Origin: Macrostomum lignano
Taxonomy: Eukaryota
Assembly: GCA_002269645.1 (NCBI GenBank)
Contig: NIVC01000022.1
Span: 62,001 to 126,000, forward strand
DNA: 64,000 nt
Direction of reading: 5' to 3'
A program made the position numbers and the translations under genes. The stretch's first letter is position 1, and the number at the start of each line of letters is the position of its first letter. Under the pieces are notes generated by a model. It did no database searches, was not told the origin of the DNA, and saw nothing but the letters and a program-made list of their open reading frames with translations. Positions 12,646 to 15,700 of the stretch are shown piece after piece.

Positions 12646-12772
12646 TTTCCATATGATTCAGCACTCAGTCCTTCCAAACTGTTCCACATAGCACAACAAA
12701 AGTGATACGCTATTCTCAGCAGTGTACTCGCATGCAGCCATTATGATGATATAACTGCCCCCTGCATTGCAG

Positions 12773-15700
12773 GACCTCAGCCTGACCGGATCCCAGATCG
12801 GCTCCGCCCGGAGTCGCCTCAGCTCCGGCTCCGGGGGCGGCCGCGATTCGGCCAGAAGCCGCGGTGGTGGTAGCGGCTGGCGCGGCAGCGGCGGTGGCTC
12901 CCAGAGCGACCTGAGCAACGGAGCTCGCAAGCAGGCCGGAGGCGGCGGCGGCAAGTCCACGGTGTCCAAGGCCTCTTCAAAGGCGTCCTCGGCGGCCTCG
13001 CACAGCTGCTTCCTGCCGCCGCAGGGCCTGCCGGACAGCGCCCGCTCGGACGCCACTGTAAGCGCCGTGTCGGCCGCGAATTCCACTTATCGGCAGACGC
13101 CTCGCATTCGGCAGCGACTTCTGCCGGAGAAGCAGCAACAGCAGCAGAAGCAGCAGCAACAAAAGAAGCAGACAAAGCAGCCCCAGCAGCAGCAGCAGAG
13201 GCCCCCAGAGCTGGACATGTACCTGGATTTGAACCAGTTGGACTCGGACAACGACGGCGCGGACGCGGAGGCCAAGCAGGCGCTGGATTTGGTGGCCTCA
13301 GGCGGCGGCCAGCAGCAGCAGCAGCAGCAGCTCCGCGATTGGGACGAAATTCGCGTCGCCTCAAGCGGCGAACTCGGCGAAGAAGACGGCGACGATGATC
13401 AGCGGATGTTTCACGGCGACAAGCGGGACAATAATGAGGATGAAGAGGCCACCGTCTCGCCGCTGGCCGTGTCGGATAGCGCCCGGCAGAACGTCGAAGC
13501 CTACGTGGCTAAAGTAAGGCCGTCAGTGTGAATGCAGTCGGTAACTGTGTTGTCCTAGGAAACAGTTTAAGGATTTGGCTTAAAAATTTCAAAGGAATCA
13601 CCTGAGAAATCGCCATATGAAACACTTGAGAAATTGGCATGGGAATCACCTGAAAAATCGCCTTCGGTATCGTCCCGATAATCGCCTTAAAAGTCGCTTT
13701 GAGGTCACCTCAGAGCTCCTCATCCCGCCCTTCTCCCAGGTTTCAGCCGCCACCCGCATCCAGCGCTGGTGGAGGCGCCACAGGCGCCGCCGCGCCGCCT
13801 GCCAGGCCGCCCTGCGCCGCTTGGCGACCGAGTCGAAGGCGCGCCTGTCCTCGCTGGGCCCTGAGCTGCCCACCTCGGCTGAGCAGGCGGAGGCCGTCCG
13901 GGCCAAGCGGGAGGCGGCCGCCTCGCAGGACCGGCAGCGAGCGGTGCGGGAGCTCCGAGCCCGGCGCGAGGAGAAGCGGGCAGCCGAGGCCGCCGATGCG
14001 AAACGAGTCGCCGAGGCGGAGGTTGACAAGCTGGACAGGGCCGGCCTAATCCGCAAGTCCAAGGTGTCCGCCAGCGGTCAGGGTCGGCTGCAGGTTGGTT
14101 CCCGCCGGCAGATAGACGGGACCTACCGGCTCACTGCCTTAACCTTTTATCACACTATTTACGGCCACTCTTATCGCTATTCACGCCCCATATTCACCCA
14201 CTCCTATTGCATTCGCACCCATATTCACCCACTCCTATTGCATTCACACCCATATTCACCCACTCCTATTGCATTCGCACCCATATTCACCCACTCCTAT
14301 TGCATTCGCATCCATATTCACCCACTCCTATTGCATTCACACCCGTATTCACCCACTCCTATTGCTTTCACACCCATATTCACCCACTCCTATTGCATTC
14401 GCACCCATATTCACCCACTCCTATTGCATTCACACCCATATTCACCCACTCCTATTGCATTCGCACCCATATTCACCCACTCCTATTGCATTCGCATCCA
14501 TATTCACCCACTCCTATTGCATTCACACCCGTATTCACCCACTCCTATTGCTTTCACACCCATATTCACCCACTCCTATTGCATTCACACCCATATTCAC
14601 CCACTCCTATTGCATTCGCACCCATATTCACCCACTCCTATTGCATTTGCATCCATATTCACCCACTCCTATTGCTTTCACACCCATATTCACCCACTCC
14701 TATTGCATTCACACCCATATTCACCCACTCCTGTTGCATTCACACCCATATTCACCCACTCTTATTGCATTCACACCCATATTCACCCACTCCTATTGCA
14801 TTCACATCCCTTAGCCACACACGTCTTGCTTTTTCTGCCGGCCCCGCAGACGCCAAAGGAGCGCCGGGAGAGCTCCAAAGCTGCAGTCGCCCAGTCGCCA
14901 AGTCCGACACCGCGAAGTGAGCAAAAGCAGCAGAAAAGCGGCGGCAGCAGCAGCAGCAAAAAACAGCAGCAACAACCCGAGCCTGAAGACGATGCCGCGG
15001 CCTCCCCAGTAGCCGGGGACGCCGTCAGCGACCTGGACACGGCCACCCTGGTGTCCGCTGTGAGCCGCCGCACCGCCGGCTCAGGCTCCTCTAAAGCGCA
15101 GGACATCTTCAGCACGCTGAAGGCCTTGGAGGAGCCTCCGGACTCCGGCGCCGGCCGTAGCGGCAGCGGCGTCGGCGGCAAGCCGCGCAGCGCCTGGGTT
15201 GACGACATCGACAAGCTGCTGTCGGCAGAGGCGCCGCAGACCGGCGGGAGCCTCACGGCCGACCGGCTGGCGGCGCTGGACAGCAGCGGCAATTCGTCGA
15301 AATCTGCCGCTGCCGGCAAGCGGATGAACAGCTGGCTGACCGGCGTGCAGCTGCAGCAGCACCAGCCCCAACAGTCGCCGCAGCAGTCATCGCGGCAGGA
15401 GCAGAGCGGCGGCGGCGGCGGCGGCGGCGGCGGCTTCGTTGAGACACCGAGAGCGGAAGCGATCTCAAAGCAGCTGGATGCAGCAATGGAAGCCGCTACT
15501 AGCCAGGTGAGGGCCAGGAAGATTTTCTCACGCGTCGCTTAAAGTGTTCCGTAGCCGTCTTTCTAATTTATTTGTATTACCCTGAATTAGGATAAACTGA
15601 ATAGTCAGATAACATTTTATTTGATACTGATTTAGCTTTAAGGTTGTAAGCAGTCGCTCTAGTTCCTTACTTTCTGAGGGATCAGTTCAATTGAAAAAAA

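Follow-up and report, generated by a model that had tools for sequence, protein, structure and literature searches.

Nematode spliced leaders SL1 and SL2 end in ...GAG and supply no AUG, and the genomic ATG is retained; the nematode SL1 system is like the flatworm case presented here in that a short leader, put just 5′ of the coding region, takes the place of an outron. Every flatworm leader reported so far ends in AUG (PMC12582326). In Schistosoma mansoni this 3′-terminal AUG acts as the initiator methionine (Cheng, Cohen, Ndegwa and Davis, J Biol Chem 2006), with more than 40 complementary DNAs that need it, as that work is described in later papers (PMC9851317; PMC12582326). Here we present a probable case from Macrostomum lignano, the centrosome and cilium gene CEP131 (AZI1/dilatory), which lies in a stretch of 64,000 nucleotides (nt) of scaffold NIVC01000022.1, called the window below, whose position 12773 is NIVC01000022.1:74773. 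We estimate at roughly 0.7 the probability that CEP131 takes its initiator AUG from a trans-spliced leader joined at 12772/12773. To our knowledge CEP131 is not among the published leader-AUG cases, and our literature search found no paper mentioning this one. It resembles the S. mansoni messages, as far as they are described in those later papers, in its AUG-ending leader, its phase-0 acceptor, the lack of a genomic AUG for a conserved N-terminus and a methionine provided in trans. It is unlike them in that S. mansoni has another leader, whose use was shown experimentally, whereas for M. lignano, a free-living macrostomid, we infer the leader-exon junction from the behaviour of the annotation, and a start at the leader AUG because a conserved motif has to be translated.

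M. lignano has a single 35-nt spliced leader (SL), CGGTCTCTTACTGCGAAGACTCAATTTATTGCATG, which ends in ...TTGCATG and directly precedes a GTAAG in the SL RNA gene (PMC8629364); we also write its 3′ end as …AATTTATTGCAUG or …CAATTTATTGCATG. The Macrostomum genome paper marks the final ATG of the leader as a translation start codon (PMC10468722). Between 30 and 39% of M. lignano genes are trans-spliced, with enrichment for conserved genes and human homologues (PMC8629364; PMC5730564), and among motifs it is [T/C]TNCAG, placed exactly at the junction, that shows the strongest enrichment at trans-splice acceptors (PMC8629364). The studies of trans-splicing and operons in this species (Wudarski et al. 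2017, PMC5730564; Ustyantsev and Berezikov 2021, PMC8629364) share with our case the organism, the leader and the acceptor motif, and CEP131 belongs to their enriched class of human homologues; leader-AUG use and CEP131 are absent from their discussion. An initial annotation of the window, made from the letters alone, had stated that flatworm leaders end in AUG and had guessed that the DNA came from a flatworm with such a leader. The literature confirms the former, for M. lignano as well (PMC8629364; PMC12582326), and the guess was right on both counts. A search of the window for the leader sequence found no copy, as expected, since SL RNA genes lie elsewhere and none is needed here.

Eight exons joined from 12773 through GT-AG introns form a single open reading frame (ORF) of 1125 codons. 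Along its whole length, and with 100% identity, the encoded protein matches NCBI PAA93717.1 ('hypothetical protein BOX15_Mlig032023g27, partial [Macrostomum lignano]'; scaffold NIVC01000022.1 of GCA_002269645.1, Mlig_3_7), whose annotated range corresponds to window positions 12773-19114 (+). A homologue search with the full protein was swamped by low-complexity words and returned M. lignano matches only; hence we re-ran it with the conserved core and added an exhaustive HMMER search. The conserved-core search found 62 relatives named CEP131, 5-azacytidine-induced protein 1 or dilatory, and the exhaustive search found 141 relatives at E ≤ 1e-30 (best E 6e-186). The homologue alignment spans residues 240-1111 and includes proteins named CEP131 in Argopecten, Strongylocentrotus, Clonorchis, Schistosoma, Anopheles and others. 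The Pfam families PF27681 (CEP131_CC) and PF27695 (CEP131_C) are precomputed hits on the database protein identical to our model; a local Pfam scan of the model (hmmscan) gave no match, including for these CEP131 families, which are known from the precomputed hits only. A PDB sequence search found no relative. The IQ-like motif AATRIQRWWRRH in exon 2 has a counterpart, RIQRWYR/KIQRWY, in the orthologues. Judged by these homologies, the eight-exon gene is CEP131.

The first coding exon (12773..13513, +; 741 nt, 247 codons, phase 0/0) opens in phase 0 with GAC CTC AGC CTG ACC GGA TCC CAG ATC, which encodes DLSLTGSQI. It is preceded by a 3′ splice acceptor region (12755..12772, +), the proposed trans-splice acceptor, made up of the pyrimidine-rich CTGCCCCCTGCA and TTGCAG (12767-12772), with the junction at 12772/12773; positions 12761-12772 read CCTGCATTGCAG. 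The sequence TTGCAG/GAC fits the M. lignano trans-splice motif [T/C]TNCAG at the junction (PMC8629364), although this match is weakly discriminating, cis acceptors ending in CAG too. Upstream of the exon the frame reads ...AAIMMI*LPPALQ/DLSLTG; the stop is a TAA at 12752..12754 (+), 18 nt upstream of exon 1, which ends the frame in this copy's unspliced RNA, and no in-frame ATG lies between it and exon 1. The first in-frame ATG within the ORF is codon 149 (13217-13219). A leader AUG joined to GAC CUC... would be in frame, giving MDLSLTG... and 1125 further codons free of stops.

The opening residues belong to a conserved motif, [D/E/N]L-x-L-x-G-S-Q. Among the full-length relatives that we fetched, a set without Drosophila, 30 orthologues have it inside their first 68 residues, preceded by 1-67 residues (Met counted). 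Conservation of the motif reaches from cnidarian-grade animals to vertebrates; M. lignano keeps it intact at residues 1-9. The shortest lead is that of Anopheles cruzii (MELSLYGSQI), where the Met alone precedes the motif. Two residues precede it in the trematodes Clonorchis sinensis (MLDLSLRGSQI), Paragonimus heterotremus (MLNLSLRGSQI) and Schistosoma japonicum (MMNLSLKGSQI), five in sea urchin, 9-17 in molluscs, 13-16 in the insects Bacillus rossius and Anabrus simplex, and 14-29 in the remaining vertebrate sequences whose start is complete. On this comparison a Met followed by DLSLTGSQI is a natural N-terminus, within the orthologue range. Because the motif is conserved across phyla, it must be translated in M. 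lignano, and with codon 149 as the next AUG, translation has to begin 5′ of 12773.

The initial annotation had noticed the phase-0 acceptor opening an exon without an in-frame ATG, the 28-bp satellite upstream and a competing cis mini-exon, ATGCATCCG/gtgatt, at 12047-12055, and all three are present in the sequence. It had also placed DLSLTG near the N-terminus of CEP131, which holds in the 30 orthologues. Its suggestion that insect orthologues begin with MDLxLxGSQI holds only in part: A. cruzii begins with MELSLYGSQI, but B. rossius and A. simplex have their 13-16 residues first.

Where the available gene models begin is informative. Three models from two annotation sets open without a Met, at the D of DLSLTG: PAA93717.1 at the locus studied here and PAA63905.1 at a second genomic copy (Mlig032023.g16; L001, NIVC01001805.1, where L001 10001 is the equivalent of 12773), both 'partial' at the 5′ end, and UniProt A0A1I8H0Y6 from the older ML2 assembly. 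For the Mlig_3_7 annotation, the leader was trimmed from leader-containing reads, the reads were mapped, transcriptional units were cut at the resulting peaks (TBONE) and ORFs were called by TransDecoder (PMC5730564). A gene whose AUG resides only in the trimmed leader would therefore be given a 5′-partial ORF from the first base after the acceptor, as is seen for CEP131. The GenBank 'partial' flag thus already encodes the leader-AUG case of this gene implicitly.

The second copy adds two further arguments. First, its frame has no stop between the acceptor and an ATG further 5′ (MAMLSSVLACSHYDITAPALQ/DLSLTG). A transcript model that included this sequence would have given a complete ORF from that M, yet the model begins at D, which argues that it is the transcript model as such that starts at the acceptor, and not the ORF alone. 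Second, the pattern of change between the copies marks where coding begins. A 1-nt deletion in the second copy shifts the TAA out of frame, which argues that the stretch 5′ of the acceptor is non-coding. Over the 133 nt before the acceptor the copies differ by indels of 1, 3 and 1 nt, whereas over the 741 nt of exon 1 they differ only by 10 mismatches and two in-frame 6-nt indels; coding constraint therefore begins at 12773. The two copies were assembled separately, on scaffolds of 549 kb and 202 kb, and have the same structure without gaps.

We propose the following sequence of events. The CEP131 primary transcript would come from the gene's own promoter (possibly within 11907-12127) or be polycistronic with the upstream kinesin gene. 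This pre-mRNA would be trans-spliced at the TTGCAG acceptor ending at 12772, with 10775-12772, including the 28-bp satellite, discarded as outron or intergenic RNA. The 35-nt leader (…AATTTATTGCAUG) would be joined directly to the GAC at 12773, so that the leader-terminal AUG would be codon 1, in frame directly before the motif, and GAC codon 2. The predicted product is M-DLSLTGSQIGSAR…, of 1126 amino acids. The start MDLSLTGSQI, which the initial annotation had put forward for a leader AUG plus exon 1, draws support from the acceptor motif, the three Met-less models, the second copy and the absence of a genomic AUG.

Several points weigh against this reading. An in-frame leader AUG is expected one time in three by chance, and it is found in 28% of S. 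mansoni trans-spliced mRNAs (PMC9851317). Acceptors of parasitic flatworms are often common to cis- and trans-splicing (PMC12582326). A GenBank 'partial' flag could in principle mean an incomplete transcript assembly. The gene ID Mlig032023 was not found in the papers and supplements that we searched. The exact sequences of Met plus the model and of MHP plus the model are both absent from a collection of 15 billion proteins, a result that cannot discriminate between them. Finally, a conserved block of 221 nt located 0.7 kb upstream contains an ATG...GT mini-exon.

This last point is the basis of the rival explanation that survives best, in which an upstream cis exon supplies the ATG, either as the sole form or alongside the leader at a shared acceptor, a sharing for which the parasitic flatworms just cited offer a precedent. 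The best candidate is the mini-exon ATGCATCCG (M-H-P) at 12047..12055 (+), which is followed by gtgatt, ends in phase 0 at the GT and would give MHP-DLSLTG. It is kept in the second copy and lies within the 221-nt block (11907..12127, +), which adjoins the 5′ side of the satellite and has 2 mismatches and no indels between the copies; the 720 nt upstream of the block have about 28 mismatches (~4% divergence) and 7 indels. Conservation of the block between the copies is on a par with that of coding sequence. An extension of two or three residues would moreover be like the ML and MM starts of the trematodes. The same conservation could equally mark a promoter, however, and from the sequence comparison we consider that the block may be the CEP131 outron's promoter and transcription start site, or else a (non-coding) exon lying upstream. 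Against its use as a coding exon, none of the three gene models includes the mini-exon; had it been present in the transcript, TransDecoder would have given a complete ORF from M and not a 5′-partial one from D. Its donor, GTGAT, is without the G at +5 that belongs to the consensus GT[G/A]AG, present at 65% of donors in M. lignano (PMC8629364), and an in-frame ATG at 11972 that would lengthen it is GTG in the other copy. We regard this explanation as unlikely. The predicted N-terminal tryptic peptides differ: (Ac-)MDLSLTGSQIGSAR with the leader AUG, MHPDLSLTGSQIGSAR with the mini-exon.

Other upstream ATG exons were considered and rejected. The version of the mini-exon that starts from the ATG at 11972, of 28 amino acids, falls with the loss of that ATG in the second copy. 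An ATG exon at 12653-12667 (MIQHS/gtccttcc) has a poor donor. The remaining upstream ATG...GT candidates in phase 0, which we enumerated, all run into the satellite.

A second objection would be that the models are truncated at an internal cis acceptor through an artefact of annotation or assembly, the true ATG exon having been missed, whether in a collapsed repeat or beyond the kinesin gene. The locus is repeat-rich, with satellites on either side, M. lignano assemblies are polyploid and difficult (PMC10468722; PMC8629364), and the older models of paralogous copies, based on ML2, suffer from bad frameshifts. But the two separately assembled copies agree in structure and are free of gaps, and the same-strand upstream gene ends only 2 kb away. 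In the nearest relatives with complete models, furthermore, the Met is separated from the motif by a single residue, which leaves no need for a missing coding exon. We consider this explanation very improbable.

Equally little credence is due to initiation on an mRNA trans-spliced or starting at 12773 but at Met149 (13217), or on unspliced RNA at a near-cognate CTG (12755) or TTG (12767): although the in-frame ATG exists, the CTG and TTG are in frame between the TAA and the acceptor, and non-AUG initiation is documented in other systems (PMC9851317), a Met149 start would drop the conserved DLSLTGSQI that is intact in M. lignano, the 1-nt deletion takes the CTG out of frame in the second copy, and the region 5′ of 12773 is absent from the transcript models.

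If CEP131 does start from the leader AUG, comparison with the trematodes suggests how this came about. The CEP131 genes of Clonorchis, Paragonimus and S. japonicum are orthologous to that of M. lignano and are alike in having the first coding exon within 1-2 codons of the motif. They are unlike it in that a genomic start, ML- or MM-, is kept: a genomic ATG stands one codon before the motif in all three trematode loci and in neither M. lignano copy. The start contexts are …tattcag/caATGTTGGATCTGAGT in Clonorchis, …tttatttag/ATGCTGAACCTCAGC in Paragonimus and …gtgtaaacATGATGAATTTAAGC in S. japonicum. We lean towards the view that Macrostomum CEP131 lost the genomic start codon that trematodes keep and is now wholly dependent on leader trans-splicing for its initiator Met.

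The trematode start codons themselves lie close to acceptor-like sites. An AG of this kind is found 2 nt before the CEP131 start codon in Clonorchis and 0 nt before it in Paragonimus (positions 2990-3003 of locus L003 and 2990-3003 of locus L005, respectively); a leader AUG joined there in Paragonimus would be read in frame (M-M-L-N-L…). It may be that flatworms share, for this gene, trans-splicing directly at the start codon.

The remaining CEP131 exons are all on the + strand. Exon 2 (13740..14093) carries the IQ-like motif AATRIQRWWRRHRRRR; exon 3 (14850..15506) is part of the concatenated model that is 100% identical to PAA93717.1; the conserved coiled-coil core begins in exon 4 (15718..15927) and continues in exon 5 (16370..16683) with EKLRREKW...TVKGLEPEIQ. 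Exons 6 (17133..17433) and 7 (17733..18176) follow the GT-AG model, and exon 8 (18758..19114) ends with a TGA stop at 19112-19114. Tandem repeats largely fill four of the seven introns: a 31-bp unit in 20.6 copies (14165-14806), (AGAC)n in 87 copies (15958-16295), a 20-bp unit in 10.6 copies followed by (GA)n (16704-17025), and a 26-bp unit in 14.7 copies (18277-18657).

CEP131 is the middle one of three consecutive genes on the + strand, between a KIF21-like kinesin gene (coding sequence ending at 10774) and an ArfGAP/PH gene (20749-24201); the stretch that contains them (window ~2773-24201) has the identical gene order in the second copy (L001 1-27211). From the kinesin stop (10774) to the acceptor there are 1998 nt of intergenic or outron sequence (10775..12772, +) with two satellites, all of which trans-splicing would remove under the leader-AUG reading. 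The first, a 22/46-bp satellite (ACGCTAGAATACCACTCCATTC), starts about 100 nt past the kinesin stop; by eye it extends over ~10870-11186, about 320 nt, and over ~7830-8435 in the second copy, about 600 nt, and a tandem-repeat run (from 11000) confirms 11000-11186. The second is the 28-bp satellite (CAGTTGCTGGGCCAGCCTCCCAGATCCT) at 12128..12646 (+), with 18.5 copies and 92% matches. It belongs to a dispersed family that is not specific to CEP131, with three arrays in the window: this one, 20193-20523 (+) and ~53090-54085 (-). Two of the three arrays sit upstream of consecutive same-strand genes (CEP131 and ArfGAP).

About 840 nt of the kinesin-CEP131 spacer is satellite, and the repeat-adjusted distance is ~1.1-1.2 kb minus the kinesin 3′ untranslated region, close to the threshold of 1 kb of repeat-adjusted distance used for M. 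lignano operons (PMC8629364). Same-strand kinesin, CEP131 and ArfGAP genes with repeat-rich spacers are arranged as in the operons of the M. lignano studies (PMC5730564; PMC8629364), and it is possible that the three form a polycistronic unit. In two ML2 models (P0002 and P0003) the C-terminus of CEP131 is fused with the zinc finger of ArfGAP, which hints at read-through transcripts.

The annotated ATG of the ArfGAP gene (20749) lies 3 nt past an acceptor-like CACGCAG/CAA (20738-20751), and a leader AUG attached at this site would also be read in frame (M-Q-M-A-T…). A further TTGCAG acceptor is found at 20559-20564, just past the satellite and upstream of this gene. Elsewhere, an Rfam scan of the window gave one weak transfer RNA match only, at 55363-55432 (+), with 30.7 bits against a gathering score of 29. 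We disregarded a sigma-70 promoter and terminator scan, whose bacterial model is irrelevant to a flatworm.

Use of a leader AUG as initiator is an established flatworm mechanism (Schistosoma, 2006; acknowledged for Macrostomum in PMC10468722), of which CEP131 is, under our reading, a further example; the case therefore leaves the understanding of the mechanism itself unchanged. It is related to that of slORFs (slORFfinder, PMC9851317), in which the leader likewise gives the receiving transcript a start codon. It is unlike them in that slORFs are called from leader-containing reads and ribosome footprints, whereas the CEP131 frame is the main conserved ORF, derived from sequence and annotation, and not an alternative one.

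There are practical consequences for annotation and for experiments. Models flagged as 5′-'partial' in M. lignano and other flatworms may turn out complete if the leader AUG is included, and PAA93717.1 and PAA63905.1 should on our reading be M followed by DLSLTG…. In M. lignano, for which transgenesis is available, transgenes or knock-ins at CEP131 would have to keep the acceptor; a genomic ATG cannot be relied on. For the evolution of the group, CEP131 of trematodes and of M. lignano would form a clean case of a start codon handed to the leader. If this is true, an essential gene of ciliogenesis and centriolar satellites has become locked into trans-splicing, which would be a concrete and datable evolutionary ratchet.

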